Shown in pieces: positions 1-51,593 of a stretch of 64,000 bases of DNA (positions are counted from its first letter, which is position 1; the number at the start of each line of letters is the position of its first letter). Source of the stretch: Macrostomum lignano (Eukaryota). Location: positions 277,516 through 341,515 of the forward strand of contig NIVC01000462.1 in the NCBI GenBank assembly GCA_002269645.1. Reading direction: 5' to 3'. Position numbers and translations under genes: made by a program. The notes under the pieces are model-generated. The model had not been told where the DNA came from, ran no database searches, and was given only the letters and a program-made list of their open reading frames with translations.

Positions 1-124
1 ATTGGAGTGATTACCGGGCCGCGCACTGAGTGGCAGACTTGACTGCGGCAGCGGCTGGCTGGCGAGGAGGCGCCGGGGCCTTCGATATACAGATTGTTCG
101 GCTTCACCACGGTGTAGAAGTTGT
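1..124 (-). pseudogene. Decayed PAN/apple-like exon-2 remnant of the WSC-PAN family (runs off the window edge)
   Basis: Minus strand reads NFYTVVK..., like the paralog exon-2 starts (NFYKMMK, NVYTVLK, NAYTVLK). The acceptor position reads tttcaa instead of tttcag. A frameshifted segment reads PAAAAVKSATQCAAR*, with a stop where paralogs have the second Cys of CxxxC. Confidence 0.5.
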
Positions 125-890
125 TTGAAAGAAAGCAAATTTGTTGGTCGAATGATGCATAAACATTTGGGGTTTGCCTGTGTGGAAATGAGGTTGACTT
201 GAGACTGTCGATAGGCTGTTGTAGTGACGATCAGAATAGTGATGAGAGATAATAAATAAAGAAAACACCACTAAGCCAAATAGCTTCATAGATGTCGTCA
301 TATAGTCGAACCAACCGCTTGTTTCGGCACTCTAAAAATAATTCGTTTCTACTTTTATCTTCTCTAATGTGCTTGGCAAAATCAAAAATCATATCAGGCT
401 CCCCACCACTTAAATCTCGAGTACCAAATGTTTTCGGGTGACCTAGCAACAAAATATCCCATGTCTCAAATTGTTAAAGACCATAAACGACTAAATTTAT
501 GTGGTGATAAATAATTGCGTTTTTTCTATCCTCAAAAGTACGAGTAGGAGTAATTGGAATCTTTATGTATCACAAAATACGAAGGTGAAGAATAACAACA
601 TCAAAACTTTTGAAATTCGTGCATTCGAGCGTTGGAAACTCGGAGCAATAGTACTAGTAATTTACTTGTAGAAAATTAAATACACCGCTTTTTGTAAAAA
701 GTTTTTTCCTTAAGCCTTACAAGTCCTCATGGTTCATCCTATATCCAGAAGGACTTCTGTACTTCTGTTGGCTCCAGAAGCCACAGAAGTACGCGTACGA
801 GCATCTGCAATTTTACAGACGATGTCCTGTGTGTGCTTTCTGACTTGTCAGGGGGGGATTGTCACTGACTATTGACTGGCTGACTATTAA

Positions 891-1022
891 AGGCACGTTC
901 ACACTGCCATCAAAAAACGACCAAATTTCTTGTGATTACAGAACTTGTACATCAAATTTGATTTCTTTTGTACATTGGTCGTGTGATTTGGTGGCTCGTT
1001 TGATGGCAGTGCAAATGAGCCT
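891..1022. mobile_element. PIF/Harbinger-like MITE (132 bp)
   Basis: Imperfect TIRs aggcacgttcacactgccatcaaa / tttgatggcagtgcaaatgagcct, flanked by TAA on both sides (888-890 and 1023-1025). A 3-bp TAA/TTA TSD is typical of Harbinger. Confidence 0.65.
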
Positions 1023-1289
1023 TAAGCTTTAACTCACTCTGTGCCCTGCTTAACGTGCCAAGCGTGCACCCCACTCATGCGTAAATCAATGCGTACATAA
1101 TGTACTTTTACACCAACTTTTATCAATAACTAAAATATCCTTTTATACCACTTCGTATTTAAATAATTGCATCTAGTTTTCTTCGGTGTGTTTTACTTAC
1201 TCAGCAAATATAACAGTCCGCTGTATTGCTATCGCTCCAACTGAAACAAGTCTTACCGGCGTCGCGTCACTTTCCTTGACAATGGCGCT

Positions 1290-1775
1290 CACCAAGAGAC
1301 AGGGGCACCCACCAAGAGACAGGGGCACCCACCAAGAGACAGGGGCACCCACCAAGAGACAGGGGCACCCACCAAGAGACAGGGGCACCCACCAAGAGAC
1401 AGGGGCACCCACCAAGAGACAGGGGCACCCACCAAGAGACAGGGGCACCCACCAAGAGACAGGGGCACCCACCAAGAGACAGGGGCGCCCACCAAGAGAC
1501 AGGGGCACCCACCAAGAGACAGGGGCACCCACCAAGAGACAGGGGCGCCCAACAAGAGGCAGGGGGCACCCACCAAGAGACAGGGACGCCCAACAAGAGG
1601 CAGGGGCACCCACCAAGAGACAGGGGCGCCCAACAAGAGGCAGGGGGCACCCACCAAGAGACAGGGACGCCCAAAAAGAGACAGGGGCGCCCAACAAGAG
1701 GCAGGGGCGCCCAACAAGAGGCAGGGGGCACCCACCAAGAGGCAGGGGGCACCCATGAAGAGACAGGGATGCCCA
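1290..1775. repeat. 20-bp minisatellite (CACCAAGAGACAGGGGCACC)n, about 24 units, degenerating rightwards
   Basis: Direct tandem repeats visible in the sequence; they explain the overlapping repetitive ORFs at 1186-1779. Confidence 0.97.
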
Positions 1776-2358: not shown

Positions 2359-2935
2359 GTTGCTGGAATTGAAAGGTTTTGTTTTTTTCGCTTCTAAAAT
2401 TCAGTTTACACTAGGTAAGTAGACTGGGACCATGTAGTTTTATTTGTGTTGAATGGACTCTGTAACAGCCAATGAGATTGTTCATGATTCATTCATATGC
2501 TTGCCACTGAAATATTCTCACGACCAACACATTTTCAAACACGGCCAATGCAACCCGATAGTCCTACATGCTAAAAATGACATTTTAGAAAACATTCAAG
2601 CCAATATTCTACGTTGCAGATGCAGAGGAAAATATCGTGCTTCGCAAAATTTATTGGACTCGGCTTAGCTTCTTTTGTTTATATTGAGATCGGTTGTCCA
2701 ACATTGGATTGGATCGGATTGGATTGCTCAAGTTTGAGTGTTTTATGAGCTACATTTTAATCAATCGCACTAACTATCACGGGACTTAGGCAATCTAACA
2801 GGACTAGTAACTGCAGGGATAGCTACTCATATTTTTTTATGTTTCCAAAGTAAAAATCTCAAGTTATTTATCGTTCATTGTTCTTCTTCTCCATGCCGAC
2901 ACCCTCTTGTCGCAAGAGTCAAGCCCGTTTCGCGC

Positions 2936-3682
2936 TCAGCCACGCTGGTAGAGAGTCCAGTCGGGTCCGGTCAGGCTGGCTGGTGGGTAGGCGAACGTCA
3001 GCAGGTGGCAGGCGAGCAGCCGCTTGGAGAACACGGCGGCCTGGCAGTCGGCTCTGGCGCTGCAATGGAGCAGGCAGTCAGCGTCGGATCGGGCAGCGGC
3101 CGGCCAGGACGAGGTCTTGGAGCTGTCGGTCTTGACGAAGAGGCTGTTGTCCTTCTCAACCAGGTAGTAACGGTCTGAAATAGAGATTTTTTAAACAAGT
3201 TTAGTGCCACATTTTCTTCATCCTGTTTTTTGCATGAGAAATTAGTTCTGACCATGGATTAATATCGCCCGTCACTCACAGGGGTAGCTAAGAGCGAACA
3301 CCGAGTTTCGAAATGGACCTCCGCATATTTGCTGCGAGTTCCCACTGCACTGTCTGTTGCAGTCGCTCTCATTGCCTTTGCCCTGCGATCCGATTGAGTT
3401 GCCGCAGAAGCACTCGACACCAACCTGCACCCCGAAGTACGAGAATCCGCCCAGAGAGCAGGCGCTGCTGCACAGCTCGAGAGTCATGCTTGCTCTTATG
3501 GAAGGGTCGTGTGACCGAATCTCAAACGGACCCAGCTGGGTGACTCCAGTCAGTCCGTCCAAGTCTCTGGCCTTGCCCGTGTAGTCCACGTAGCAACCCA
3601 CGTACGAGTAATTGACAAACCTGCAGGTCGCGCAGGTAACCAGAGCGCCGAGTAAAATCGAAATTTGCGATAGCTGCTCCAT
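2936..3682 (-). CDS. Secreted WSC + PAN/apple-like protein, copy B (213 aa; exons 3280-3682 and 2936-3174)
   Basis: Hydrophobic N-terminus MEQLSQISILLGALVTCATC and an 8-Cys WSC domain. Phase-1 intron gtgagt...tttcag (105 nt). Exon 2 reads RYYLVEKD...WPAAARSDADCLLHCSARADCQAAVFSKRLLACHLL...WTLYQRG*. The spliced frame is open. Confidence 0.85.
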
Positions 3683-3730
3683 GCTGCTTTAGGCTTTGCT
3701 TTTTTTGTTTCTGCTTATCGCATAATGGGG

Positions 3731-6068: not shown

Positions 6069-6790
6069 TCAGCCGCGCTGGTAGAGAGTCCAGTCGGGTC
6101 CGGTCAGGCTGGCTGGCGGGTGGGCGAACGCCAGCAGGCGGCAGGCGAGCAGCCGCTTGGAGAAAACGGCGGCTAGGCAGTCGGCTGTGGCGCTGCACCG
6201 GGCCAGGCAGTCCATGACGGATGGGGCAGCGGCCGGCCAGGACGAGGTCTTGCTGGTCTCCACAGTGAGGATCGAGTGCTTGATCATCTTGTAAAAGTTT
6301 TTGTCTGAAACAGATTGTGGTTGAGATGTGTTTCAGAAAGGACCACCTGTACATAACCCTGAAAGTCAATCGTCGCAAGAACAAAAGCTACTCACTCGGG
6401 TAGGTCAGAGCGAACACCGAGTTTCGCCATGGAGCTCCGCAGATCTGCAAAGAGTTTCCTCTGCACTTTGTCGCTTTCGTTGGCTTTGCCCTGAGATCCG
6501 AAGGAGTTGCTGCAGAGGCACGCTTTTCCAACCTGCACCCCAAAGTAGGCGAAGCCGCCAAGTGAGCACACACTGCTGCAGAGCTCGTGCGACATTTCGG
6601 TCGTGTTTATCCACTTTCTGGAGGTGATTTCGTACTCGCCAATCCTTGTGACACCGCTTAGCCCGTTCAAGTCTCTGACTCCACCATTTAAATCCACGTA
6701 GCAACCAACATAGGAGAAGCGGACGACCCTGCATGCAGCGCAGGTCAGGAGAGCGCAGATAAAAACTGGCAGTTTCGGCACCCGAAGCAT
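6069..6790 (-). pseudogene. WSC-PAN copy C, frameshifted (exons 6396-6790 and 6069-6304)
   Basis: Near-identical to copy H, but H's 12 nt tgcagcacacag are replaced by 4 nt aaag at about 6458-6461 (net -8). This removes a WSC Cys and shifts the frame. Splice sites and exon 2 are intact. Confidence 0.8.
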
Positions 6791-8431
6791 CTTTCAGCTG
6801 CTCAACTGCAAGCTACTCGGCTGGAGCGCACTAGTTCCAGCTTTTATAGTTGAACAGCTGTACGGCCGCAGAGAATTGTTTCGCTCGCCCAATGGCATCG
6901 CAGCTTCCATTTAATCTGGCTTAGATTAGTCATCTGAATTTTCTGCAAACCGATCGGGCCAACATATGTTTTTGAATTTGCAAATCTTCGTTATTTCAGG
7001 TGTTTTCAGATATTTCCAATGGAGTTAAACGTGTTGCAACAGTGAGTAATAGTGATTAGTGTGTACTTGAGCTAATGGAACTTTAGTAAGCATGTCTAGC
7101 ACCGCACTGTCGATATTTTGAATGTAATTAGATTTCTCTTGTTAAGTAAGAGTAGTTCAGTCTCATTCGACTCTGTTACTTTTAAGACAATCAAATAAGA
7201 TTCTCCTAATACAATATTGGTACTGCGCGACAAAAATGTTGAACAAATCTGGATTATTGATTTAAGGTATGCTGACTTACTTGATTCAGCTGCAGAGCTG
7301 TCCCGGAGGGGACACAGCGGAAAGGCGCGGACCCCCATTCCGCTAATCCCTGAACAACCGACGCGTCGCTATGGGCAAAGGGTTGGCGCCTCCCGGGGTG
7401 GTCCCCCAGTTTTGCCAGCTGTTTTTTCCATAGTCGGCTCGAAGGCCATGAAAAAGATTTGTGGGCTACCCCCGAAGGGTCGTGGTACCCACCCGGCCGC
7501 TCCATTTGACCGGGAAGTAGGGCCAAAAAAACCCTGAAGGCTGGCCCGATAGAATAAGGGGGACCGCTAGTGACCGGTAAACTCCCCAGCCTTTCAGCCC
7601 ATCTGTACGGTCGAACACCTTAGGTGTTAGAGGGTACGTCAAGCAGTACCACCGGGGACTAGAATCCAGCCGATACGATGCGAAACAATTTCAGCGTAAT
7701 AGAAACAAGTAGCTATTAAAGCATTTGGCCTTATTGTACAATCGCGACATGTATGTGCTGTTATTACGAGCTACTATTGCAATGTCACTCCGGTAGTCCA
7801 AAGGGTGAAAAGTTTGATGCTTAAATTCAACACAAAATCATTTCAGCTAGCAGCATTCCAGCTTATTCTGAGTGACCTGAATCGAAAGATTTATCAATGC
7901 TTGTCAGTTCCGTTCACCTGAACTAACTTAACGAAAAGTTCTGGCGATTGGCAATAGTTATCGTTAGAAACTCGACACAAAGAAGCGCACGTGTAAGGGG
8001 CACATCCATCATGGGGCTAATGCCGAGGTGTTGCATGACAGCAGCCCATTCAAGAGTTACGATGAGGTCATGCAGTCTTTAGGTTGGAGCCACAAACAAG
8101 CTTGCATCTGCATCTCATATTCAAGTCGCATGTCAACAGACGCTTGCTTCACCAACGAGCGTATTGTCTTAAACAACAATGGAGGGCTGAAAACATTGAC
8201 CGAAATGATGGAGAGGTTTTCTAGTCTCCGTTTTCGAAGATATTTTTAAGAACTTCATCCAAGTTAAAGTAAAAACTGTGGAAATTTTCGAAACCTACTG
8301 ACTCGTCCCCGTCCCCGCGAGTATTCAAGGCAGACCCTAGGGCTGCTGGACTGAACTGGGCTCCGACGCTGGCTACCCATCCAGTGGTTTTTGCCGAACT
8401 TGGGTATGCGGGTCTGGCTCAAACCTGGACC

Positions 8432-10374: not shown

Positions 10375-11690
10375 TGGTTGTAGTTTCTACATAGATCTGG
10401 TTGTAGGTTCTACATAAATCTGGTTGTAGGTTCTACATAGATCTGGTTGTAGGTTCTACATAGGTCTGGTTGCAGGTTCTACATAGATCTGGTTGTAGGT
10501 TCTACATAGGTCTGGTTGTAGGGTCTACATAGGTTATGTAGGTTCTGCATAGGTCTGGTTGTAGGTTCTACATAGGTCTGGTTGTAGGTTCTACATAGGT
10601 CTTGTTGTAGGTTCTACATAGACCTGGTTCTAGGTTCTACATAGGTCTGGTTGTAGGTTCTACATAGGTTATGTAGGTTCTGCATAGATCTGGTTGTAGG
10701 TTCTACATAGGTCTGGTTGTAGGTTCTACATAGGTCTGGTTGTAGGTTCTACATAGGTCTGGTTGTAGGTTCTACATAGGTCTGGTTGTAGGTTCTGCAT
10801 AGATCTGGTTGTAGGTTCTACATAGGTCTGGTTGTAGGTTCTACATAGGTCTGGTTGTAGGTTCTACATAGGTCTTGTTGTAGGTTCTACATAGACCGGG
10901 TTCTAGGTTCTACATAGGTCTGGTTGTAGGTTCTACATAGGTTATGTAGGTTCTGCATAGATCTGGTTGTAGGTTCTACATAGGTCTGGTTGTAGGTTCT
11001 ACATAGGTCTGGTTGTAGGTTCTACATAGGTCTGGTTGTAGGTTCTACATAGGTCTGGTTGTAGGTTCTACATAGGTCTTGTTGTAGGTTCTACATAGGT
11101 CTGGTTGTAGGTTCTACATAGGTCTGGTTGTAGGTTCTACATAGGTCTGGTTGTAGGTTCTACATAGATCTGGTTGTAGGTTCTACATAGGTCTGGTTGT
11201 AGGTTCTACATAGGTCTGGTTGTAGGTTCTACATAGGTCTGGTTGTAGGTTCTGCATAGATCTGGTTGTAGGTTCTACATAGGTCTGGTTGTAGGTTCTA
11301 CATAGATCTGGTTGTAGGTTCTACATAGGTCTTGTTGTAGGTTCTACATAGGTCTGGTTGTAGGTTCTACATAGGTCTGGTTGTAGGTTCTACATAGGTC
11401 TGGTTGTAGGTTCTACATAGGTCTGGTTGTAGGTTCTACATAGGTCTGGTTGTAGGTTCTACATAGGTCTTGTTGTAGGTTCTACATAGGTCTGGTTGTA
11501 GATTCTACATAGGTCTGGTTGTAGGTTCTACATAGGTCTGGTTGTAGGTTCTACATAGGTCTGGTTGTAGGTTCTACATAGGTCTGGTTGTAGGTTCTAC
11601 ATAGGTCTGGTTGTAGGTTCTACATATGTCTGGTTGTAGGTTCTACATAGGTCTGGTTGTAGGTTCTACATAGGTCTGGTTGTAGGTTCT
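10375..11690. repeat. 23-bp minisatellite (GGTCTGGTTGTAGGTTCTACATA)n, about 57 units
   Basis: Direct tandem repeats. Recurring variant units (ggttatgtaggttctgcatagat; gacc.ggttctagg) suggest a higher-order duplication of about 270 bp. Confidence 0.97.
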
Positions 11691-11844
11691 AGATCCAAAA
11701 CGAGATACTACTCAGAATCGCAGTTCTTTGTTGCATTTTGCCAGAAAAGAGTGAGGGCTGCAATGTAACGCTCGTAGATTCTTAGTTCTGAACCCGTCGT
11801 TTTTTATTTTTTTTACTTCTTGTCACTCAGAATCTGAACTCGCG

Positions 11845-13010: not shown

Positions 13011-15880
13011 GCCGTAAGCAGCCTTCAGCTGCGCCGAGCAATAGCTGCGGCTGAGCTGTCGGTTGCACATCTGACTATCAGCGAAGGTACAAGCAATTTT
13101 TACAACAATAGCAACAAAATACACCGAGTGGCCACAGAGAGGTGGAGATGTTAGAAGCCACGCCTTTGGGCCGCTCTTCTCAAAAAGTCTACTCCCCAGT
13201 CAGAGTCAAAATGAAGGCTCTCTCATCCCTCAGAAGCAGCTCAGAAGAGGTAGTTATTACTATTTACTAATATTCCAAAATTATTGCAATACTGTTTACT
13301 CTTAAGGAGGAGAACCTATAACATTAAAGCCACAGTTAGCGACCTATTCAGTCAGTGAATAGACAATAGTCGAAACTGAAATTGGAAGTGCTCTCGTTCT
13401 TTACTACTGACTATTAGTAAAGTCTATAACCAACTATAAATACTACATCCGGCTCTATAACCAAATAAAAAATATAGCATCACAACGAAGGAACATCTAT
13501 ACTAACTTAGCGCCTCAGGAATTCTAGAAACTTTTGACAGCTACAAGTCAATTAATGTCAACTCTGAAACGAAAGATAGGAACATTCGATCCGTTCTGCT
13601 ATTTCACTTAGTTAGGCTTCCAGGAAACAGTTTGTGATAGTTTCTTGATCTAACAAAGCTAAGCTGAGGGACTCATCATTGCTCAAACGAGCTCAAACTA
13701 AGATATCTAAGATTCTAAAATTTGCCGTATGCCGATAGAATTTTCAGTCGATAAAATATTCGTAATATCGTAGGTCTCATGTGTTTGATTTTGGAATTTT
13801 ATGAATAATTTAAATGACTTTCCCCTTCCTTAATGAAATAGATTCATAAACATAATGTGTGTTAATTTAAATACGAGTAAAATTTTCTAGGTTTTCTGTG
13901 CTCAAAATATTTTCTAAATGGAAAACACCTTGTAAATTTATTTCCTTATCTATTAGATTCCAGGAAAAAAATTTGGTGCCATTCCAAGCCAATTGTTTGT
14001 TTAACGGGCTTAAAATTCTGGGCTATTAAAATCCATTTGCTTCCTTCTACGAGCGTAGAAATAAATGGATTCTAACTTCCTGATATGGTTAACCAAACAT
14101 AGGATACTGCAACAACTTTACTCCTCTGTTCTCTTTGTTTGCTTTACGATAAATTGTGAAATGCATCGACGTCAGCCAGCAGGAAGTGAACAAAACGCCA
14201 CGTGCATGTCTGTCCTCGCCTGTTGGGTGACTGCACCGGCTGTCGGCCATACACTGAAGTTTTATGCTGGGTAGTTTCGATATAGATTATCTATTTATTC
14301 AATTGTCTACCGGTATCTCCGCTACCCAACCATACAATCCACAAATTCAGCTTATTGACGCAATACGACATGAGTGCAATAAAACAAAATAAAATACATG
14401 TAGCGTGCTTTCTGGCTTCCGCAGAAACTTTTTTCTTGAGCTAGCTAAGCTCGTACGTATAAATTGATGGACAAACAAGCGACACGAAATCTAGGAGTTT
14501 CTTCGATTTGTTTGCAAAGTAGGGATGCGAAAAAAGCTAGGAGTTATTTTGGAATTCAAGAATTTTGCCAAAGCCAAGAATTTACAGTCCATTACAGGCT
14601 GACATTGTGTCGGCTCGCTATGTAGTCGGATCCACATGCGTGTCCTACGAGCTACTAAAAAACGCATTAGATTGGAAAACTGGTACAGTGACTCGCGCTG
14701 CTACAAAACCTATTATGGCCGGCCTTACCATGATTTTAGAACACTAGCTAAATATAAAATACGGCTTTTCTTTCAAAAATACAAGCGGAGCTGCACCATT
14801 ACATTTGCCAGCCAGCACCGGGGTTGCAAGGGTGCGCCAAATTTTTTACTGCGAATTGGGACTGAGGGAGCGCAGCCCCCTAGCCCTATAGCCCCCTGGA
14901 TGCACCAGTAGTGCGTCAGGCCTGGACTCGCAAACAATCCAGTATTTGAAGCCCCAAGATTGAGTCGCTAAATCTACATGCGGTCATGAAGATGGTTGAG
15001 ACATTTTACTTTTTATAAAAAGTGTAGAAAATTCGTGTAAGGGAAACAGATGTGCTTCCGGTGCTCAAGGCTTGAGTTTGTTCCGAAGTTGAGTTGATTT
15101 GACCAAATCACCAACGCGCGACTGTATCGCTGGTCTATCTAAGAGACTTTTTGCGCCGTCGATGACTCACTCCAGCTGGCTGAGAAAATGTCACAGTTGA
15201 TAAGTGAACCCAGAGCTACTGCCATCAGCCTCTACAGGACGTCCTGCTGTTCACCTTGCAGACTTCATTTAGGCAGAGCTAACCTCAAACCAGTCGATAC
15301 GTGGGCTGCGTGCTATGCGACGACGGGCGGCCGACATCGTAGGCGAGTGGACTTCTCCTCGCTGCGGCGCGCCATCTGACTCACCCTGATCGCATAAACT
15401 AAGAACTTGTAAACAAGGGCGTTTTCTGTTGTTGGTAAACGTTGAAATATCAAGGTTTAATATATAGGACAAATTATTATGTCTTTAGGTTTAATATACT
15501 CGTATGATGACAAAAAAACCTCCTCAAGCCACTATCCTGCGTCCCAGATGCAGAGAAAATGATCGTGTTTATTGCGAAATTTATTGGGCTCTGCTTAGCT
15601 TTTTTTTTATATTGAGATCGGTTGTCAAACATTGGATAGCAGCATTAACTAACGAAGAATATTCGACTGTCGGCTCAGGCTTATGTAATTTATGAACTAC
15701 TTTAGCCAAGACTGGATCACTCTAACTGTCACGGGTCTTAAGCAATCTTACAGAGGTAGTAACTGTATGTATATCAATTTTAATTTTTCCGAAGTAAAAA
15801 ATATCTAATTTTTTATTGTTCATTGTTCGTCTTCTCCATGCCGACACCCTCTTGTCGCAAGACTCAAGTTAGTTTCGCGC

Positions 15881-17295: not shown

Positions 17296-17990
17296 CAAAA
17301 GAACTCAAGCAGCTCAGTGTATATGTTAAAGCTTATAACAATTTTCTGGATCTATAGTTGCATGTAGTACCGGATACGGCAGATATACGGCAGTAAAGTT
17401 TTGCAGAGCCACTGAAACTTCCATTAGTTACGATTAGCTTCGATTTGCCGCATTTGCTGCTTCGAGTCTCTGGGCCAGGTGAAACACTACTTATCCGCTT
17501 CTGCAAAGAAGCAAGCACTGGCAGCAGAAGTTGCGGCAGACTTCATCCGGCACTGAATCTGCCTGAACGGAGGCCAAGTCTGATTACACAGCGACTTTGC
17601 TTACCTAAACGAGAGATAAAAGCGCTTAAAATGTTTGGGAAGTCGGGATCTTTGTAGCAAGACTGGCAGACTCCATCAATCTGGATATAAAACGTTTTAA
17701 ATTTTTAACAGAAAGAATGCACGACGCGCGTAGAGGCTACCCTAGCATTTTGGCTGTTAATGAAGTAATGGATCTGTGGAAGACTCATCCAGCATTAAGA
17801 GAGGCAGCTATCGACACAGCATTTGTACGACAATAATTCAAGTTAAAAATACCGTTTAAGGAAGAAGCTTCTTTCACTATCCACAGAATAATTGTCTCTG
17901 TTGAATGAACCCAGGCTAAAATTCACTTTTGAAAGTAAAACATTTGTAGGCAAAAACTCTTCATAGCAAATTTACAAAATGACTTTTGTT
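17296..17990. repeat. About 700-bp duplicated block, copy 1 (paired with 28635-29310)
   Basis: Highly similar direct copy starting caaaagaactcaagcagctcagtgtatatg; the ORF track shows near-identical short ORFs in both copies. Confidence 0.9.
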
Positions 17991-26704: not shown

Positions 26705-26705
26705 A

Positions 26706-36600: not shown

Positions 36601-39566
36601 TAGGCTTTAAGAGAACAGGAAGCCTCATGGGCTGTCAGGACGGTCTTGCTGAGCAAGTCTGCAAGGTCATCCACTTCCTGACAGGTGGTTGGAGCGACGG
36701 TAGTCAGCTGATCTGTCTGGCATTTCAGGGTTTCCGTGAAAGCCGTCCAATCAGTGTTCCGGACGTTCCTTTTCCACAGAATGTGAGGCTTGGGGCAAGA
36801 GGATTGCAAACGAAAACGAACGAAGCGATGGTCAGACAGAGACTCCTCTTCGTCCCACACCTCCCAGTCCTTGACTAAAGGAGCCAAGCCATGGGAGACG
36901 AGGGTAACGTCGAGGGCTTCCGTCCATCGCCCGTTGTCAAAGGTGGGGGTTCCACCAATGTTGCAAAACTCAGTGTTGGTGGTGCAGATTTAAGCAAGGA
37001 GTTCCTCGCCTCTGCTATTGGAAATATTACTTCCCCAGTGGGTGTGGTGAGCGTTGATGTCGCCCGCCACCAGCAGCTCGAACCTACGGTTAGAGCAGTA
37101 GTCCACGAGGGAGGTGAGGTTGGGTGGAACCGCGGGGCCATCGCCAAGGATATAGATCGAGGCAATGATGACCGTGCGGTTGGTGATAATGTGGTTGGAC
37201 TGAATGACACAGAGGTCTCTGTCAGAGAGGTCCGGTCTGTGCCAAGCTTTGAGGTGGGTAGATACGAAAATGGCTGCTCTGGGGTTTTGGGGGTCTTGAA
37301 AACAGTCAAAACCAGCAGGAATATTCGGAATCTTACCTTTCTTTGTCCAGGGCTCCTGGAGTAGGATGATGCCCGGTTTCGCAAAGTTTGCCACCCGCAT
37401 CAGGTTGGTCGAGGCCGCGATGCAGTGGTGCAGGTTAAGCTGCAGGATGTCCACTCCGGAAATTCCACGAGTGGTCCGCGCAGCTTCCTGCCGGCTCAAG
37501 GCGAGTTGTGCAGGAGAGCTGCCTCTTCTGCCTCGCCGATAGCTCCAGGCTCCAGCTCCATGGGCTCCTCCCGGATGGATTCCATGGTCGAGGGCGAGGT
37601 CGCTACCTGGGCGGCATTCTCGCTCTCGGCCCGGTTTTCCGGGGGGGGCCGCAGTGGTGACACTGGGCTGGGGGTGGCTGCGGTTGGGGGCCTTGGCGGT
37701 GTCCAGCAGCTGCTTCGCGCGCTGAGTCAGACCAGAGCGGATAGTTGTCCGGGCGGGTTTCCGGCCCTTTCCACGTCCGCCTGTTGCTGCAGCTTTCGCG
37801 GCTTTCCCTCTGACAGGGTCCACGTCCTCGGAGGGGTCGTGACAACCGGGAGCTTCTTTTCCTGGGCGTTTCCGCGCGGCAGAGCCCCCGACTGCCCGCT
37901 TACGCTTCTCCGGGGGCGGTGGGCGGGTGGCGTCAGACTCAAAGCTAAAGAGCTGAATCTGCAACATCCCGACAGAGATGATGGACATGTCCGGGTAGCG
38001 GAGCATCCAGCTATCCGACAGTCCAAGAATAGCCGTGAAACCGTCTCCGCCCGGCTTGGAGATGGTCTCGTGAACTACGACACCGTTGGCCGGTAGCTCC
38101 GGGTTGGAGGCCACTAGCAGGTGACGCAGCTCGTCGGCCTTGGTGATGCAGCTGCGAGCCGGGATCCAGGCACGGTGCCGGTGTGTCCGGGGTCGCTCGT
38201 CCTCCCTGTAGATGAACAGGTTCTCCAGCTCCGTACCCCAGTCGAAGGTTTTCAGCAGCTCGAGGAGCTGCTGTCCTGACTGGCTGTCGGTGGGCTGGAT
38301 ATAGAGGGCTTGGTCCTCGACTTTCGTCTTTTGGACTCGAATAGTAGAGCCGCTCAAGGCCATCTTGACCAGGTGGGAGTCCAACCTGCGCCAGATAAGG
38401 TCGAGCTGTTCGGCCGTAAGAGGCGTCTCCTGGCCTTGGATAACCAGGGCCGGCTGCCTTTTGGCCATAGCCGCGTAGGTTCGCTTCGGCTTTGTGGTTT
38501 GGCCAGCGCCCCCCGCTTTGGATCCCTCCACGGCCGTGGGAGCTTCCACACGGGCAGAGGTCCGGTCACGGGAGGGGCCAGCCGCACCAGGAGCTTCGGC
38601 GGCACCTGACGCATCAGACCGGCGCGCGGGTCCACCCCCTTGTCGGATGTCGGTTCCTCCGCGGGGTTCGCAGAGTTACCGGCACCCTCCTCAGAGGTGG
38701 CCGGAGGGGCGGCTTTCGCATTCCTCCGTTCCTCCGCTTTGCGCTGGAGAAAGGCTTTGTAGCGAGCAATGCTACGGGCCTTCTTTTTCGAAATCTGAGG
38801 TCCGCTGTCTTGTCCAGCCACTCCGGTATTATCCTGAGCGGCGGCAGCGGCAGATTGAGAGGCACCGGGGGTTCCGGTGTTGCGAATGTCCGGCTGGGCC
38901 GCGGTGCCAACCTCGGTTGGTGCTCTAGCAGCCTCGGACGTGTCGGAGGTAAATGAATACTCCATGAGTCGCTGAAAGGCGAGTGGGGACTAGAGGTGAG
39001 AAGCCGCTGGGCCGTAACCCCAAACCCAACAACCAGGCCAAGAGGTAGCGACCGGGGGTGGCTTAAGCCCGTACCGGCCCGACCGCTAGCAACCGAGAAA
39101 CTCCCCGGCTAAGAGCCCGGCTTGGAAAAACCAGAGGCCGAACCAAAGGACCAACAGCACGGTACTACACTGGGCCCTTGAGGGAAGCAGGAGGACTGCC
39201 TCCGGAGCCTGCGGACTGGCCGCATACCCTGTTAAGGTCAGAGGGTGGTACCTGTTCCTCAGAGCCGTGGCCAGAGGTACCTGATACGCACAGGTGCACT
39301 TCCGGGCGGAGCCCGTACCCAACTTGGCCAAAAGGCCACGGATGCGTTGCCGCCGCCGGAGCCCAGTCAGTCCAGCAGCCCTAGAGCTGCCTTGAACACA
39401 TGCGGGGCGTGAACCCCTGGGTCGGCTTGCGAGTCAGCTTGGAGAGAGTTCTCCTGCCATTCCTGCACCAGAATAGAGGGGGTGCAGGTGTGTAGGATCG
39501 CAGACCTTAGCCCGTAGGCCTAGTCTGTCTCATGCTACACAGGCGTGCTGTACCCGCCATTGCATG
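33654..39566 (-). mobile_element. Full-length non-LTR retrotransposon, LOA/R1-group-like (ORF1, APE, RT, RNase H, CCHC), 5.9 kb, multiply frameshifted
   Basis: 14-bp TSD cgaagtacaaggct (33640-33653, 39567-39580) and a 3' tail of (AAGT)n-type repeats. APE: QLNLHH, LQEPW, GDINAHH, SDH. RT: PGPDNI, LDIDGAF, GGPQGGVLSPILWNLVMD, YADD, LGVTLD. RNase H: [26 protein letters not shown]-terminal CPFC..EHFICEC. ORF1 (ATG 38965) has a DUF4780-like AWIP...LL..NP.L segment. Confidence 0.92.
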
Positions 39567-39580
39567 CGAAGTACAAGGCT

Positions 39581-41310
39581 ACGGTGGGATGCTGTTCCTA
39601 ACAGAGAGCTGGTTTTGCCACGACTAATCAGGGAGAAGCCACTAGAAATAATTCGGAGTGACGATGCGGTTGATAATACGTACCCACCTGTTCTGTCGCG
39701 CTTTGACGTGGAAGACGCAGTTCCAGAAGCAGATCAGATTCCTTCAATGGCAGTTGTTTTAGCTAGCGCTGCTCCACCAGAACCAACTGCGTCTTGTTCT
39801 GCATCATTTCTACGACTGCATGCATCGTCTAGCAAAGTAGCTGGAAACCTACGACGAAAGCTGTGTCGGCAGTGTTATAAATCGCGAAGCCGAGAGGGTT
39901 ATATCTTCTATAGCGCGCGGTCTGATGAAAATAAAGCTCAGAGGGCGTGGCCGTCTCTCTAGGCCGTCACGTGTATTTATACCATAGACAGTAATATTCA
40001 TACGAGTATAGCCCAAGCTTTGGTGTCACACACATGCATATGCACACATACACAACAGGCAGGAGAAGACGATCGATAAGCTGCGGCGCAAAATCGAAGA
40101 CTCGCAGGTTGGAAAGTTCAGCAGCAGCAGCAGCAGCGCCCTCCACCGTCTAGTGCAGAGCTCTATGAAGCAAACAAAGTCTCGCCACCGTGTCATGCGT
40201 TGGGCTGTCGAAGACATCTGCTCTGCTATTCAAGTGCATCACAAAAGTCCTGCCGCGTACCGACTTCTGCGAGATCAGTGGAAGATGCCATTTCCATCAG
40301 AGACGTCAATTAAGCGGCGCATCAGATTGTTTTTTCAGGAAGAAGGCGTTTGTGAAGTTACCATGAAGCTGATGAGAAAAAAGTTGCAAGACTGCACAGA
40401 GAAAGAGCGAGTGGCCACTCTTTGCTTTGATGGAATGAGCTTATCAGGATGTGTGCGTTACAGACAGTACAAGGACAAGATAATTGGCTTTGAGACTAAT
40501 CCTGCTCAAGCGGATGCACCAAAAGTTGTAGACGAAGCGGTAGTAGGCGTAGTTCGCGGTATTTTGCACAACTGGAAGCAGTCGATTGCATATTACCCTG
40601 TGCATCGGAGTCTCGGACAGGAAGGTTTTCGTAACGCGATTGAAAGTTGTCTGACGGCGTGTCATCATGCAGGAATTATCGTTGTAGCTTTGGTTGCAGA
40701 CCAAGAGACAAGCCAGTGGAGCTACCAAGCTCTTCCAAGCCGTTTCTGCACCACCCAGTGACAAACGAGCCTGTTTTTGTCATCATTGATATCCCTCACT
40801 GCCTGAAAAATGCGCGAAATGCTTTGTTCAAGAACGACATTGTGTTCGACGATTGCAAAACAGCAAAATGGAAGCATGTTACGGACTTCTATCAAGCCGA
40901 TAGTCGCAACAAGCTTAAATTGGCACCAAGGTTAAGCGACAGTCACTTCAACCTACAGGTTGGAAACAAAATGAAAGTATCTCTCGCGGCGCAGATTTTC
41001 AGCCATTCAGTCGCCAGTGGAATCCGAACTTCGGTGTATCACAAAATAATAGAATCCGATGGAGAGCAAACAGCAGAGTTTTTAGATAGAATTAATGGCA
41101 TAAAAGACTAAATTGCTGCAGAATCACGTGAGCCATTCAGTTTTGAGATGCTTCCGACACGCAAATGTGACCTTCCCCTCGTGCTCCGTGCACACGGAGA
41201 TCGTCTGGCAGCAACTGTGCGTCAAGTTCGCTCGTCTCAGACAGCATCACTGGTGCCGCTGTGAGGCCAAGCCGCTGAAGGATAGGACAGCGCGATGCTC
41301 AGCAAGCTGA
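39581..41310 (+). pseudogene. Remainder of the P-like transposase (fragmented, internally deleted)
   Basis: SPAAYRLLR..PFPSETS, LCFDGM, WKQSIAYY, LVADQ, DIPHCLKNARN and KMKVSLAAQIFSHSVA, then a C..H-type C-terminal segment (41113-41310). Frameshift at about 40730. The segment carrying the third catalytic acid is not found. Confidence 0.82.
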
Positions 41311-43155: not shown

Positions 43156-43439
43156 TTAAATTAATTTAATGTTGATTTTGCCTTCCTATTCATCGTACTT
43201 GCCAAGCGAGCAACTTTACCTGAATTTCATATTCGTACGAGTAAGCTACTCGCACACATGCCAAGATCATCTGAGAAGCACTTCGAAACAAATTATGTCG
43301 AATGGAAACCTGATTTTGTCACTCATTCAAAATATATTTGTTCTTAGCTTCTCTTCCAACATCTAGTAGATTATGTGTATTAGTTGCATTCCTGAGTGGC
43401 GTACAGTTCTGGATGTAGTTTCAGACACGGACACTTTTG

Positions 43440-43653
43440 AGACAATCCAGTCGGGTCCGGTCAGGCTGGCTGGCAGGTAGACGAACGCCAGCAGGTGGCA
43501 GGCGAGCAGCCGCTCGGAGAAAACGGCGGCCTGGCAGTCGGCTGTGGCGCTGCACCGGGCCAGGCAGTCAGCGTCAGACTGGGCAGCGGCCGGCCAGGAG
43601 GAGTTCAAGCACTAGTTGGACGAGACTGTTTTGCTTCATCGTTGTGTAGACGT
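43440..43653 (-). pseudogene. Orphan PAN exon I (no WSC exon upstream)
   Basis: Acceptor tttcag then VYTTMKQNSL, a frameshift, then NSSWPAAAQSDADCLARCSATADCQAAVFSERLLACHLL...LTGPDW. The 3' end abuts the Penelope fragment. Confidence 0.8.
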
Positions 43654-45202: not shown

Positions 45203-45936
45203 TCAGCCACGCTGGTAGAGAGTCCAGTCGGGTCCGGTCAGGCTGGCCGGCGGGTAGGCGAACGTCAGCAGGTGGCACTCAAGCTGGAGCTGGGAGAAAA
45301 CGGCGGCCTGGCAGTCGGCTGTGGCGCTGCACCACAGTAGGCAGTCCGCGTCAGATTGGGCAGCAGCCGGCCAGGATGAGGTCTCGGACGAGATGACGGT
45401 GAGACTGTTCTGCTTCAGCACAGTATAGACGTTTTTGTCTGAAATCAGTTTTGTCAGTTTAGATGGCAGTTTTACTTTTCACCCATACCGATAAAACGGG
45501 TATTATTTCCACGGTGGCAAACAGAATCAATTCACTCACTGGGGTAGCTCAGCTCGAAGACGGAATTGCGGTTAGCCGCTCCGCACTTCTGCCCCGAATT
45601 TCCTGTGCAGAGATTGCTGCACTGGCTTTCTCCGGCTGCACCATGGACTCCGAAGGAGTTTCCGCAGAAGCACTGCTCACCAACCTGGATACCGAAGTAC
45701 CGGAAGCCGCCTAGAGAGCAGACGCTACCGCACAGCTCGTGCGTCATTGTGGTCTTGTTGTACACGTAACCGCCAAATGTGATGCTGAGTTCACCGATGT
45801 TGCTGACTCCGAGTAATCCATTCAAGTCCCTTGAGCTTGAGCTGTCCACATAGCAGCCTCTGTAAGAGAAACTGATGGACTCAGAGCAGGTCATGAAGGC
45901 CAGAAGCCATATAAGCAGTTGCTCAAGTTGATTCAT
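45203..45936 (-). CDS. Secreted WSC + PAN/apple-like protein, copy J (210 aa; exons 45540-45936 and 45203-45438)
   Basis: MNQLEQLLIWLLAFMTCSES signal-like start and an 8-Cys WSC domain. Phase-1 intron gtgagt...tttcag (101 nt); exon 2 is open to YQRG*. Confidence 0.85.
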
Positions 45937-47762
45937 TTTTCCTGAAGGAAAAGTGTTAAAGCGCATTTTGGGTTCTCACGCTCACGCTTTTATCTTCCAA
46001 AGCAATGTCGTTAATTGGACATGGATGACCAATAGAAGCTGTCTGCTGATATTTGGTTCTATTATTGACAATGCTTTGTTCCCATCTGGATCCGTGATCC
46101 ATTGGAATGGGAAAGGCTCTGGGATTCGTTGCCATAGTGATGCAATTCCCCAATCAAGAAATCAATTACTGGGTGCCCGAGAGGCTTGGTAAACAGTGCT
46201 GAATTAGAGGGTCCATGGCAGCAATCAAGCATACTCCTATATTAACAGCACAATTAATTAATGGCATGCGTGTGGTTTCAGAACAAAAGCCATATGAACA
46301 GAAAAAGCTAGAACCTGAACGCCATTAAAGACAGTAAACAAGATCGCATCAGACTACTGGCATCAGATTTTTATAGTCTACTGAATACAAAAGAATTTAT
46401 TGTCCCTATTTCTGATTAAACTGTTCTCGAATAAATTTCAGCACCACTTTTTCCATTTTTCTACTCACAAAAGTAGTCTAAACTGTATCTAAATTATATT
46501 TTTGTAGATATACCTGCGTTACAAAGGTGTCGTCAGAAAGTGACTTGAAACTACAAATTTTATTAGTGATTTCCAGAACTGGCTTCTTACAGGCGGTCCA
46601 GGTGCTAATTTAAGACGTTCAGTTAGACTTGCCATAAACAGTCAAAGATTAAATACTAATATTTTAAGTTCAGTTTTGCCGGTACAAGTGTCACAACACG
46701 CTCAAAATCCCATTCAAGCAAGCATCAGTGTTGAATAAGTAAACACATACGCGTCTTAAATCAGTTAACAAGTGACAGTTGAAGGTTTTTAGATGTTATA
46801 ACGAGATTTTTAAGGATCCTGAGAGAAAATTTAAACCTTTCAATCATTCGAAATCATGATCCTTGCCCCATCACCTTCATGCAACCTTGACTGGCCCTGC
46901 CAATACTCATACCGAATAGAGCAGCATCACAACAGAGTCCGAAGTGACACGGCATAAGCCCACATGCACAGATATCCGACGTCTGTCCTCATCAATGGGA
47001 TGTCTGCAGCGTCAGTAGCTCCCGCACCGCGGCTATACTGGATGGAAAAAACTTGAGAACGATCCAAGGACCAAGCTTTTCTTCGAACTATTGTTTTCTG
47101 AGATTGAATTCAATTTTTTTAATTCTGCCATCCACACTGCTTTTTGCTCCGGAAGTATTTGTGTCCGTTACCAGGAAATGAGCTTGCTGCATGCCCTCAC
47201 AATGCATTTTGTTATCTTCCTCAGCAAGTACCTTTTTACAGGTAGAGTTCCGGAAGATTGCAGGCTGGAAAACGTGAGCCCCGATGTCTCCGGAGGTGCA
47301 TCAGTAGCGTCAGCAGCTCCCAGGGATGTGGAGACTAGGTACTGGATTGTTGACGATAAATCTGCGGTGAATTTGCATGCTCTATGCGATTATTTAACGT
47401 ATAAAATGCACTGATTTACTACATCTATCAGTAAGAAAATGTACATGCACATTGAGCACTATAGCTTATTAGGTGAGAGCCAACCTCTCCTTTCCTCTCA
47501 ACTCGACTTAATTTATTTGGCGAGCAAAAATCGTCTTGACACGATTGAAGGGAACTTTCTTCTCCAAAAAACTTCTTTTACGTAGATTCTATGCTCATAA
47601 AATTGCTCATAAAGTGCAGGTATCCAAAAGTTAATTCGACCGAAACTCAAAATATTGTCCAACAGAATGTTTCTTTTGCCTCTAGCTCTAGAACTTATTA
47701 TTTTCAGATCGTTGTCACGCTGTTTGGCCTCGAAGCTGCTTGTCCGTCCTTACAAGACTCAA

Positions 47763-48475
47763 CTAGGTTTTGATGAACACAGCCCATCCGGGTCCGGTCA
47801 GGCTGGCTGGCGGGAAGGCGAACGGCAGCAGGCGGCAGGCGAGCAGCTGCTTGGAGAAGACGGCGCCGCTGCAGTTGGCTCTGGCGCTGCACTGGAGCAG
47901 GCAGTCCGCGTCGGACTGGGCAGCGGCCGGCCAGGACGAGTCGACGGTAGAGGTCACCGTGATGTCCGAATTCTTCAGCACAGTGTATGCATTGTTGCCT
48001 GAAAGTTGTGTAATTTTATTAAGATTTTCTCTCAGTTGAAATTCTAAGAGGCAGCGTCGAGCTAACTCACTCGGAAGGTCATAGCAAACACGGAGTTGAT
48101 TGAGAAGCCGCCACAAATCTGCTCTGGGTTTCCCGTGCACTGCCTGTTGCACATGCTATCACTGAGCTGTCCGTGGAGTCCGTAGGAGCTGCCGCAGAAG
48201 CACTGCTTGCCGACCTGCACGCCGAAGTATGGAAAGCGGCCCAGAGAGCAGACGTTGCTGCAGAACTCGTGCGACATGTTGTTGAGGCTGTGCACTAGGT
48301 CGCCAACACCAATACTGTACGGCCCCAGATTTTTTAACCCTTTCAGACCTGTCAGGTCTCTGTTCGAGTTATCACCGTCTCGATAACAACCAACGTAGGA
48401 GAAATGAGCCACCCTGCCGGCTGCACAGGTCAGGAGGCCGCACAGCAACGCCGACTCTAACAGTGAGATTCTCAT
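47763..48475 (-). CDS. WSC-PAN copy K with a 1-nt deletion at the exon-1 end (WSC-only product, pseudogene, or cryptic-donor rescue)
   Basis: Exon 1 (48071-48475) is 405 nt, phase 0 (atgaccttccga|gtgagt vs H ctgacctacccga|gtgagt). Exon 2 (47763-47998) needs phase 1, so canonical splicing gives ...TFRATMHTLC*. Confidence 0.65.
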
Positions 48476-49123
48476 TCTTATTCAAGAATAGTTACGGGTT
48501 AAAGCTATCGAATCTCAACAAACGGAGCTTGGAAGCAATTCTCTCACGAGCGTCATCCTTTTATCCTTTTCTGAGTACAGGCATTCAGATTTTATCCAAT
48601 CAGACGGTTCTGTAAGCTTTGAATTAGCCATGCTCGATTATTCACAGATACTAGCGACGGATCATAGGATGATTCAAACAGTTGCGAGCGTATCTAAAAC
48701 TCCGACAGTGGCGTACTGCAACTTCATTCCCGTAAACAACAATGAATAAAAACAAGCAGTCTCGTACAAGAACAAAACTGACCAAATTTATCAACCCTAT
48801 GAAGAGCAGCTACCATTCTGCAACTTTCTCATACACTCAGAAACACTGAAAAGTCGCCACTCTATGCGCCAGTGAGCAATTTCTCTTGGACTATTCTGAA
48901 ATAAAAGATACGAGAAAACTGATCGATCGGGGTAGCTTTAATCCGTCCAACCCTCGCACACCGCCCCCCCCACTTCATTCCTCGACTCAAGTCTGCCGCG
49001 TGGCCTGGCTGAATTGCGTCACTCGCAAAGGATTGAGAGACTTTACCTGCGCTCTCAAAAGTAGCGACCACAGACTGGATCTTCTGTGATGACGACTTTT
49101 CGATGTTGCTGAGTATAAAGTTC

Positions 49124-49220
49124 GTGTCCTTGAGCAAGACACTTATTTACTCTGCATTGCTTCGGTTCACCTAGCGGTAAAATGGGTGCCAGCAATAGCT
49201 GGGGTAATTGAGGGTGTGTT
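49124..49220 (+). mobile_element. tRNA-SINE core, partial copy 2
   Basis: gtgtccttgagcaagacactt...ctctgcattgcttcggttcacc...gtaaaatgggtgccagcaatagctggggtaatt. Confidence 0.7.
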
Positions 49221-50874
49221 AATCGTCAGGCATGTACAATCTCTGTCCCTCATTGGTTGTCAATTGCACAACAACCCTCGGGCAAGTTTCGTGCACAAAC
49301 TCCCCCGAAAATGGGTCCTTTCACGAAATCGTGAAAGCGAGCGAACGAAAGTTATAAAATTTTCCCGCAGCACAGGCAATATTTTTGGCGAGCTACAAAA
49401 GTTTAAACTTTTCAGTACACGAATAAAACTGTAGGGACGTTGACCCTAAACTTTGCAGGCTCTAAGCAGAGCTACGGGAGATTCTCGCAGCACAGGAGAA
49501 GATGGAATCTGTCGAGAGCCGACCCAGTGGCGGTTTGACAGCTTCAAGCAGGCTGCAGCAGTACAGATTGCTCCGTCACCTGATACTCCGTCGATCCCTC
49601 CACATCCCTGTTGTGTCTTTAAAGGCAACGATGTGGAGACAGAGCAACCATGCCCGCCCGCATGGCCCAATCCACTGACTACAACAGCTCAGTCTCGCTC
49701 TTTCTTCGGAAGGTGGCCGCCTCCCCCAGTTACTGGCTCCCTAGCCTGTAAGTTTGCGTTATTGAAAAAATTTATTCTATATACAACATTGTTTTTAAAC
49801 CTAGGAAACAAGCCTCAAAACGAAGGTTTTCCTATTTTCTGAGCAGCTTTCTTTTTTTTCTTATCAGGTATTTCCCAAAACAATAGAAATCCTTGGAAGG
49901 ACCAAACCAAAATGAAAACTAAAAAAAATCAATTCGTCAAATTTTTTTCTTCCATCTTTTATTGTCGAGATACTGCGGAAAGCGCGACCGCCCGAAAAAG
50001 AAGAGATCGAGCTTTTGCGACGATCACGGAGGAACCATGCAGCGTCGCTAGCAGCTTCCTGCTGGAAGGTGGATTTCAGCCCTTCGAGTGTCTCAAAAGC
50101 AGCGCATGAGCTGATTAAAGTAGTCAGGTTTGCGTCGTTACCTAAATTGTGCGCTAATGTGCATAAATACGCATTTTGTCAAAATCCCTAATTTCTAGAT
50201 CCATCCTGTCTAGATCCATTGCGTGTACTGGGTGCATTCCTTTTTGCACTGGTATTTGGATTCGAACTTGGGATCATGCTGCTTATAATAGGAACCTAGT
50301 GGCACAAATGAGAAAACTTCTATTGTAAATTAATTTTTAGGAAGGTGCAGGACTGCAGGTGGCTTTGCACTGATGGTTGAAAGTTGTTGGGACTCTGGTT
50401 TTGGGCAGCAAATTGAATGAGGTTTAAAGAATACGTATGGAAAGTGGATAATTAGAGTACTAATACAAGTAGTGAGTAAAAGTAGTATATTAGGAAGGTT
50501 TTCGAACTGAGATGATTTCGTTTTTTTCTTATAGAATAATCAATATGCTTCGTAGAATTAATGGGATTACGGGGGGAAGTGAAAAACTCGAATAGCACAC
50601 TCAGGAAAACTATTCAAATAAATCTTAATCCCAGGAAGATGCATGGTTTAATGCCATTTGTTAATTGCCAAAAAGCTGATTGACAATCGAGTTAAAACAT
50701 TTTTTATTTAACTCACACTATCTCAAAGTTACAAAGCGAATTCCAGCACATCAAAAATCTTATTAGATCAAAAACCGATTTTTTCTGAGATAAATATTTT
50801 TCAGTTTTGTTCAGAGTTGAATCGTTGTCATGCTGTTTGGCTTCGAAGCCGCTTGTCCTTTTCTCTGAAAGCAT

Positions 50875-51593
50875 CTAAGTTTTGATGAACACAGCCCACT
50901 CCGGTCCGGTCAGGCTGGCTGGCGGGAAGGCGAACGGCAGCAGGCGGCAGGCGAGCAGCTGCTTCGAGAAGACGGCGGCGCTGCAGTTGGCTTTGGCGCT
51001 GCACTGGAGCAGGCAGTCCGCGTCAGACTGGGCAGCGGCCGGCCAGGACGAGTCCACGGCAGAGGTCACCGTGATGTCCTTCAGCACAGTGTAGGCATTG
51101 CTTTCTGGAAGTTGTGGTTCCAACAAAAACCTACTCAATTAGATAAATTCGCAACTCCAAGAGAACGGAGCAAGGCTAACTTACTTGGGTAGTGCAGAGC
51201 GAACACGGAGTTGATGGTGAAGCCACCGCAAATCTGCTCTGGGTTTCCCTTGCACTGGCTGTTACATTTGCTATCGCTGAGCTGTCCGTGGAGTCCGTAG
51301 GAGCTGCCGCAGAAGCACTGCTTGCCGACCTGCACGCCGAAGTAGGGGAAGCCGAACAGAGAGCAGAAGTTGCTGCAGACCCCGAGCGTCATGTCAGGGC
51401 TGTACATTAATGCACCGTCGGTGATGTACGATCCCAGATTGTTAAGTCCATTCAGTGTTTTCAGGCCTGTCAAGTCTCTGTTTGGGTTAGCGGCGTCTTG
51501 GTAGCAACCGACATAAGAGAAATGAGCCACCCTGCCAGCCGCACAGGTCAAGAGGGCGCACAGCAACGCCGACTGCAGCTGGGAAATGCTCAT
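50875..51593 (-). CDS. Secreted WSC + PAN/apple-like protein, copy L (212 aa; exons 51185-51593 and 50875-51104)
   Basis: MSISQLQSALLCALLTCAAG signal-like start and an 8-Cys WSC domain. Phase-1 intron gtaagt...ttccag (80 nt). Exon 2 reads SNAYTVLK...WAVFIKT*. Confidence 0.85.

Follow-up and report, generated by a model that had tools for sequence, protein, structure and literature searches.

We analysed a stretch of 64,000 nucleotides (nt) from the flatworm Macrostomum lignano (GenBank assembly GCA_002269645.1, contig NIVC01000462.1, positions 277,516 to 341,515 of the forward strand), referred to below as the window, and found in it a tandem cluster of small genes that each encode an N-terminal WSC domain and a C-terminal PAN-type module. 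The cluster is confirmed: a search of the window with the spliced models of two copies, followed by a permissive tblastn search with five spliced models, collected 12 loci or fragments of this WSC-PAN family in the region 1-51593, all on the minus strand. Chance similarity among the copies is excluded, because the E-values go down to 1e-138. The tblastn spans are 1882-2373 (copy A), 2939-3685 (B), 6072-6793 (C), 15884-16660 (D), 22197-22289 (a fragment), 26283-26710 (F), 29404-29532 (a fragment), 30276-30998 (H), 43435-43608 (I), 45206-45966 (J), 47766-48475 (K) and 50878-51602 (L). A preliminary description of the same DNA had counted at least 13 loci; tblastn gives 12, and the higher number is reached only if an exon-2-like remnant at about 1-125 is included. 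The subfamilies agree with those described before: B with D, C with H and the fragment at 22.2 kb, F with K and L, J, and A.

Gene models were derived by enumerating the GT-AG introns in each copy, and for every copy there is a single model in which a good donor is paired with a polypyrimidine-CAG acceptor at the homologous position. The part encoded by exon 1 starts with a hydrophobic leader and contains eight invariant cysteines; exon 2 encodes 78-79 amino acids (aa), starting with a variable linker and continuing with an exact C-x3-C-x5-C-x11-C spacing. The introns of B, D, H, J and L are all in phase 1 with GT-AG ends. These models bear out the exon design proposed in the preliminary description (signal peptide and eight-cysteine WSC domain, phase-1 intron, exon 2 of about 78 aa), with introns of 68-138 nt. 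Four copies are intact: B (exon 1, 3682-3280; intron of 105 nt, phase 1, 3175-3279; exon 2, 3174-2936 with the stop included; 213 aa), H (exon 1, 30998-30599; intron of 90 nt; exon 2, 30508-30273; 211 aa), J (exon 1 from 45966, or from a second Met at 45936, to 45540; intron of 101 nt; exon 2, 45438-45203; 220 or 210 aa) and L (exon 1, 51593-51185; intron of 80 nt; exon 2, 51104-50875; 212 aa), all on the minus strand and all retaining the 12 cysteines (eight in the WSC domain and four in the PAN module). Copy D (minus strand; exon 1, 16660-16258; intron of 138 nt; exon 2, 16119-15881; 213 aa) keeps its frame open but has a tyrosine in place of the third PAN cysteine, and is probably decaying; five copies had been taken as intact, and D is the doubtful one among them.

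Exon 1 clearly encodes a WSC domain. The first exons of B, H, J and L match the Pfam family WSC (PF01822) with 49.8-66.3 bits (the curated cut-off is 27.8; E-values of 1e-13 to 1e-18), eight cysteines are invariant in 14 sequences (C30, C71, C75, C91, C93, C108, C112 and C120 in the numbering of B), and a profile search of the PDB sequences matched Kremen1, yeast Wsc1 and a glyoxal oxidase. For the second exon, the family PAN_1 (PF00024; cut-off 21.4 bits) matches the full-length proteins with 16.2-24.9 bits, B and L being above the cut-off and J and H just below. When the C-terminal modules of 15 diverse members are searched in isolation, PAN_1 is found in 14 of them at E<=1 (best 9.4e-7), PAN_4 in 10, PAN_3 in four and MANEC in two. 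A strict apple domain, of the factor XI/prekallikrein type, has six cysteines with a disulfide joining the first to the last; in the exon-2 module only four cysteines are conserved, all of them invariant.

We modelled the structure with AlphaFold, using annotated paralogues as stand-ins for the window copies. An input of 10 sequences gave a predicted local distance difference test score (pLDDT) of 57.5 and was replaced by a run with 45 family sequences, in which the pLDDT is 82.9 overall. The WSC domain exceeds 90; the C-terminal module, with 75-88, is built in the model from two strands, a helix and three further strands. The top Foldseek matches of this model are Kremen1 (5FWS) and Wsc1 (7PZ2), the latter with a template modelling (TM) score of 0.78 normalised to 7PZ2 and root-mean-square deviations (rmsd) of 2.5-2.9. 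Behind them rank factor XI and kallikrein, whose apple domains align over about 200 columns, then the lectin SML-2 (rmsd 1.9 over 58 columns), the N domain of HGF and the PAN domain of plasminogen. At the N-terminus, a hydrophobic stretch of about 20 residues, followed by small residues ahead of the first strand, is modelled as a detached helix of low confidence; the proteins have no hydrophobic C-terminus, and we infer that they are secreted. The preliminary description had read the product as a WSC domain fused to a PAN/apple domain in a protein of about 210 aa. The WSC and PAN-type assignments held up in Pfam (with the HMMER scores well over the cut-off for WSC and around it for full-length PAN_1), in the PDB sequence search and in the whole-model AlphaFold/Foldseek comparison, but the C-terminal module is a four-cysteine PAN core and not a six-cysteine apple domain. 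Searching a large sequence database with only the C-terminal module gave no match at E<=0.01, a result that is uninformative, as the search missed known family members too. The possibility that exon 2 is a diverged copy of the WSC domain was rejected, as the profile-profile comparison (hhalign) gave a probability of 0.9%.

The two exons have different histories. We estimated substitution rates by the Nei-Gojobori method for the WSC region, the linker and the PAN core separately. Between subfamilies, the WSC region has synonymous divergence (dS) of 1.2-2.9 and ratios of nonsynonymous to synonymous divergence (dN/dS) of 0.14-0.32 (up to 0.35 for pairs within subfamilies), which marks the WSC exons as duplicates of old date that are held by purifying selection; in the linker, dN/dS is about 1. 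The PAN core of the same copies, in contrast, has a dS of only 0.09-0.41. In sliding-window comparisons the copies agree at 82-97% of nucleotides in the core of exon 2, as against 47-82% in exon 1 and 10-50% in introns and flanking DNA, and GC content at third codon positions is 0.80-0.91 in the PAN core versus 0.65-0.74 in exon 1. The two exons also disagree on which copies belong together: exon 1 makes sisters of B and D (dS 0.13), yet exon 2 of B is nearer to that of H (0.11) than to that of D (0.20). The longest identical run of every cross-subfamily pair lies in exon 2 (e.g. 79 nt for D and H, 46 for H and K, and 45 for B and J). The low dS of the PAN core against the high dS of the WSC region, together with identical runs of up to 79 nt, suggests that gene conversion has acted on exon 2 only; this is the most likely cause, and the conversion is possibly GC-biased. 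Pervasive positive selection is unsupported: dN/dS exceeds 1 only in PAN-core comparisons of the B/D/H group with the K/L group, where dS is depressed (J-K and J-L give 0.6-0.8). An RNA element behind the conservation of exon 2 was ruled against, as the window has no Rfam or tRNA matches. Antisense open reading frames (ORFs) of 70-115 aa run on the plus strand through exon 2 of most copies (2878-3135, 15823-16080, 30254-30478, 43437-43649, 47655-48002 and 50882-51094), most likely a by-product of GC-rich, GCN-rich sense codons.

Some of the copies have close counterparts in public annotation. J (210 aa) is 99.5% identical to the M. lignano protein A0A1I8GNZ7 of UniProt, which starts at the second Met of J and covers the splice junction; L matches the partial A0A1I8I836 without a difference (100% over 150 aa) and part of A0A1I8HD00 with 95% identity; and K is 90% identical to A0A1I8FZH1. 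All strong protein matches are from M. lignano. UniProt already contains the family, by automatic prediction only, as 'WSC domain-containing' or 'Apple domain-containing' proteins (the latter label is carried by two members), so the sequences themselves are not new. Four paralogues are modelled in GenBank with a single phase-1 intron at the same place, of 69-233 nt (BOX15_Mlig016881g1, Mlig011376g1, Mlig032201g2 and Mlig023418g2), and the annotation of these genes was built from transcript assemblies guided by RNA sequencing (PMC5730564). This shows that members of the family, these being paralogues and not the window copies, are transcribed and spliced in the way that had been proposed. A paralogous or homeologous cluster is found at 246834-267741 of GenBank NIVC01000462.1, with two annotated WSC-PAN genes and at least two more unannotated copies (2052-2990 and 6576-7353 in cluster-internal positions) that are 79-89% identical to C and H; overall, the cluster has an identity of about 88% with the regions of C and H, and a thioredoxin-glutathione-reductase-like gene adjoins it.

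A profile search of 1.84 billion representative sequences gave 9376 matches, mostly WSC proteins. Among all the sequences retrieved, a family-specific hidden Markov model of the C-terminal module picked out M. lignano entries only. Seventy-one entries have both domains and every one of them is from M. lignano, although this number includes merged predictions of tandem copies (for example, a 1074-aa protein with five repeats). The architecture was not found outside M. lignano among the retrieved matches, where proteins of other taxa align on the WSC half only, which supports a lineage-specific expansion. Two paralogues (Mlig012529.g1 and Mlig011376.g1) were placed by Brand et al. (2020) in orthogroup OG0000005, whose 92 genes come from M. 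lignano, M. hystrix and M. spirale, with M. pusillum unrepresented (PMC7336406). We found no published description of the family in the literature searched: no paper was found in full text with six gene identifiers of the family, six further identifiers had no match in paper supplements (nor did the supplement of PMC8662610 have any), and the supplement of Arbore et al. holds nothing on WSC with PAN. The preliminary description had recognised no named family here, and apart from the automatic UniProt predictions we came upon none either. The modules are of known kinds; their combination (a signal peptide, one WSC domain and one four-cysteine PAN core in about 210 aa, multiplied in tandem within a single flatworm genus) is undescribed in that literature, and exon-limited homogenisation of this sort is, as far as we found, unreported.

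Four of the 12 loci are clearly intact and the other eight are broken or suspect. Copies A and C and four fragments are pseudogenes, all on the minus strand. In exon 1 of A (1944-2358) the eighth codon of the signal peptide is a TAA stop (2337-2335); the homologous donor GT is retained at 1943-1942, while the presumed acceptor CAG is mutated to CAA; the exon-2-like remnant at 1-125, probably belonging to A, has this CAA acceptor, a disrupted frame and an end cut by the window edge, and it is separated from exon 1 by about 1.8 kb with a 20-bp minisatellite. Copy C (6069-6790), of the C/H subfamily, has a frameshift in exon 1 near 6469 and an exon 2 that is still open (6304-6069). The fragments are a short piece of exon 1 at 22197-22289 that matches residues 19-40 of H, copy F (26283-26710) of the K/L subfamily with a 5'-truncated exon 1 (starting at about aa 98) and an exon 2, a weak match to the C-terminal end of exon 2 at 29404-29532 (E = 0.003), and copy I (43432-43608, found by tblastn) with part of exon 2 only. 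Copy K (47763-48475), which shares an identical run of 118 nt with F, is a probable pseudogene: the loss of 1 nt immediately ahead of the splice site shifts the homologous donor (48071) to phase 0, and the frame survives only through a weak donor, GTTAGC, 4 nt downstream, with an intron of 68 nt.

Transposons and minisatellites are interspersed among the copies, and this, together with the many broken copies, fits birth-and-death turnover; the tandem arrangement and fast turnover put forward before are upheld by these observations. Five long minisatellites lie between gene copies (1290-1768, 10375-11691, 21014-21934, 27277-28281 and 63084-63957), with periods of 20, 23, 54, 7 and 26 bp and 17-144 copies, and long spurious ORFs arise from them on either strand; the one at 1290-1768 sits in what was probably the intron of copy A.

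Other elements in the window include two tandem intronless ORFs for AIG1/GIMAP-type GTPases on the plus strand (55958-56947 and 58842-59738; Pfam AIG1, E-values of 9e-35 and 2e-39), the first of which has an Ala/Ser-rich tail derived from a CAG repeat. Upstream of each, at about 0.65 kb, is a 20-bp minisatellite (54968-55303 and 57865-58194), and the two minisatellites are nearly identical, which indicates that the whole unit of about 2.9 kb was duplicated. A degenerate, GC-rich retrotransposon without long terminal repeats occupies about 33500-38965 of the minus strand (GC 0.58-0.59), with ORFs for an endonuclease (Exo_endo_phos_2) and a reverse transcriptase (RVT_1) split over several frames, and a second copy of its 3' end with a similar peptide is at 53327-53764 (minus strand). 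There is also a remnant of a P-element/THAP9-like transposase at 40153-41111 (plus strand), with its TNP-like RNase H N-terminal and GTP-binding insertion domains in two overlapping frames. A 70-aa ORF (MPHLLL...KMFGKSGSL) occurs twice on the plus strand with about 90% identity, at 17445-17657 and 28782-28994, downstream of D and H; the pair is either a dispersed repeat or part of a duplicated unit.

The best explanation of the whole, to which we would give slightly better than an even chance, is a Macrostomum-restricted multigene family of secreted two-module binders, in which the WSC exon is divergent and the PAN exon is homogenised by conversion. Each gene would encode a secreted, disulfide-rich protein of about 210 aa with two modules of the PAN superfamily, an N-terminal eight-cysteine WSC domain (exon 1, with the signal peptide) and a C-terminal minimal four-cysteine PAN core (exon 2). 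Copies are born by tandem duplication and lost through nonsense mutations, frameshifts and truncations; the WSC exon is old, divergent and held by purifying selection, and the PAN-core exon is kept near identical between distant paralogues, most likely by gene conversion. What the analysis shows directly is the structure of the genes, the identity of the domains, the confinement to M. lignano within the databases searched, the pattern of selection and the signature of conversion; secretion, binding and tissue are inferred. The protein probably acts outside the cell as a lectin-like binder with two sites, for glycans or for glycans and proteins, where the variable WSC module would give each paralogue a specificity of its own and the homogenised PAN module would engage a partner common to all paralogues; the pattern of selection suggests such a division, with paralogue-specific recognition in the WSC half and a shared interaction in the PAN half. 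PAN modules bind galactose (SML-2 and MIC4), heparin (HGF) or proteins (factor XI), and the WSC domain of Kremen binds proteins. Binding of a lectin-like kind by the WSC-PAN proteins is suggested by these relatives, among which the fungal SiWSC3 binds beta-1,3-glucan (PMC9024836). The positional annotation of OG0000005 comprises the classes Non-Specific, Other and Testes, summarised as 'Testis', and also 'germline_FACS'; it includes no 'Tail' class and no socially plastic expression (PMC7336406). This is a weak hint at a reproductive role (testis region, germline), leaning away from the prostate.

Several points weigh against this explanation or parts of it. WSC and PAN domains also mediate protein-protein contacts (as in Kremen and factor XI), so 'lectin' may not be the right word. 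The full-length PAN_1 scores (16-25 bits) straddle the Pfam cut-off of 21.4. The Foldseek query was the whole two-domain model, and the WSC domain itself has the PAN/apple fold (PMC9024836), so that some of the apple matches may stem from the WSC half. The low dS of exon 2 could come in part from strong codon or GC bias instead of conversion. The best matches of B, D and H are only 72%, 72% and 84% identical and neither public protein set of M. lignano has a close counterpart of them, for which reason the transcription of these three copies is unproven. Lastly, the annotation of OG0000005 pools 92 genes of mixed classes, and its WSC-PAN subfamily is only 45-50% identical to the window copies.

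Known proteins resemble the family in parts. SiWSC3 and yeast Wsc1 (PDB 7PZ2, TM score of 0.78 in Foldseek) share the eight-cysteine WSC domain with its PAN/apple-type fold and are secreted or extracellular, SiWSC3 being glycan-binding; however, SiWSC3 is made up of three repeats of the WSC domain, Wsc1 has a Ser/Thr-rich stalk and a transmembrane helix and serves as a membrane sensor, neither has a C-terminal module of the PAN_1 type and neither is an animal tandem family. The WSC domain of Kremen1/2 (PDB 5FWS and 5FWW) is the best match in sequence and structure among solved animal proteins, but Kremen is a conserved transmembrane receptor of low copy number with a kringle-WSC-CUB architecture, and its WSC domain contacts Dkk and LRP6. 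SML-2 of Sarcocystis (rmsd 1.9 over 58 columns) and MIC4 of Toxoplasma are small secreted proteins with two consecutive modules of the PAN fold that bind galactose; both of their modules are classical apple domains, though, without a WSC signature, and they serve host-cell attachment in an unrelated lineage. Within M. lignano, Mlig-pro4, 5, 11, 28, 46 and others, which are prostate-limited candidates for seminal fluid proteins (SFPs), are also small, predicted to be secreted, WSC-containing and located in multi-copy loci. They differ from the window family in showing no overlap of primers or identifiers (18 of 76 compared), in the two WSC domains of Mlig-pro5 and in their tail/prostate, socially plastic expression.

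The last comparison raises the question of whether the WSC-PAN proteins could themselves be seminal-fluid proteins made in the prostate, transferred at mating and acting in the antrum of the partner. Many prostate-limited secreted Mlig-pro transcripts have WSC-domain proteins as top matches (PMC5977470, Table S1), Mlig-pro46, described as WSCD2-like, has an effect on sperm competition (PMC6953679), RNA815_80.4 (Mlig-pro5) has two WSC domains (PMC4490696), and the Mlig-pro genes are likewise found in multi-copy loci. We nevertheless consider this distinctly unlikely: 36 primers for RNA interference that belong to 18 Mlig-pro genes (out of 76 candidates) have no match in the window with up to three mismatches allowed, the Mlig_3_7 identifiers of the same 18 genes do not overlap those of the WSC-PAN family, the sole SFP transcript whose domains are named in a paper (RNA815_80.4) has two WSC domains and not WSC with PAN, and OG0000005 shows neither a 'Tail' class nor socially plastic expression. 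A link to SFP genes through ten multi-WSC representatives was tried and rejected, as these are from an annelid, an oyster and metagenomes, not from Macrostomum. A different reproductive reading, for which we would claim a similarly small chance, has the proteins on Macrostomum sperm or in the ejaculate as recognition molecules with a 'variable head' and a 'constant tail': the WSC module would diversify to track the glycans of partners or gametes under post-copulatory sexual selection, and the PAN module, kept uniform by conversion, would dock all paralogues on one shared partner.

The preliminary description had leaned to a lectin or pattern-recognition family, or to one of mucus or adhesion. 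On this view the proteins would serve innate immunity as pattern-recognition lectins (e.g. for beta-glucan) or would belong to the mucus or adhesives of epidermis or gut, an idea we rate as unlikely. The binding of beta-1,3-glucan by the WSC domains of SiWSC3 (PMC9024836) fits it, and so does the binding of galactose by PAN/apple lectins such as SML-2. Secreted families with tandem copies and fast turnover are, moreover, typical of immune lectins. Against it, the only positional annotation found, which lends the idea no support, is for the testis region and not solely non-specific; the published adhesive-gland transcripts of M. lignano are tail-specific, and no member of OG0000005 is classed 'Tail'. 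The closest solved structures (Kremen1 and the PAN modules of HGF and factor XI) all contact proteins, in keeping with secreted ligands or antagonists that would work as the WSC domain of Kremen does with Dkk and LRP6, or the N domain of HGF with MET; conserved developmental ligands, however, rarely expand to dozens of fast-decaying tandem copies in one genus, and the WSC and PAN modules are not joined by any kringle, CUB or protease domain, so we hold this to be very improbable. We give as little credence to the idea that the array is mostly a decaying remnant without current function, its conservation a by-product of recent duplication. Eight of 12 loci are indeed broken or suspect, and B, D and H lack an annotated near-identical protein, but dS between subfamilies is saturated while dN/dS is 0.14-0.35, B, H, J and L have lost none of the 12 cysteines, annotated proteins match J and L, and paralogues are transcribed.

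With a WSC exon that is divergent and a PAN exon that is homogenised, the family offers a clean, testable case of exon-limited concerted evolution, and this contrast also suggests which half of the protein carries the function specific to each paralogue. With 71 retrieved entries, and with one subfamily placed in an orthogroup of 92 genes, it is among the larger lineage-specific expansions of M. lignano. This species is a model for hermaphrodite sexual selection and for regeneration, in which most fast-evolving secreted proteins are without an assigned function; if the reproductive hint is true, the WSC-PAN family would provide candidate molecules for the recognition of sperm or ejaculate.

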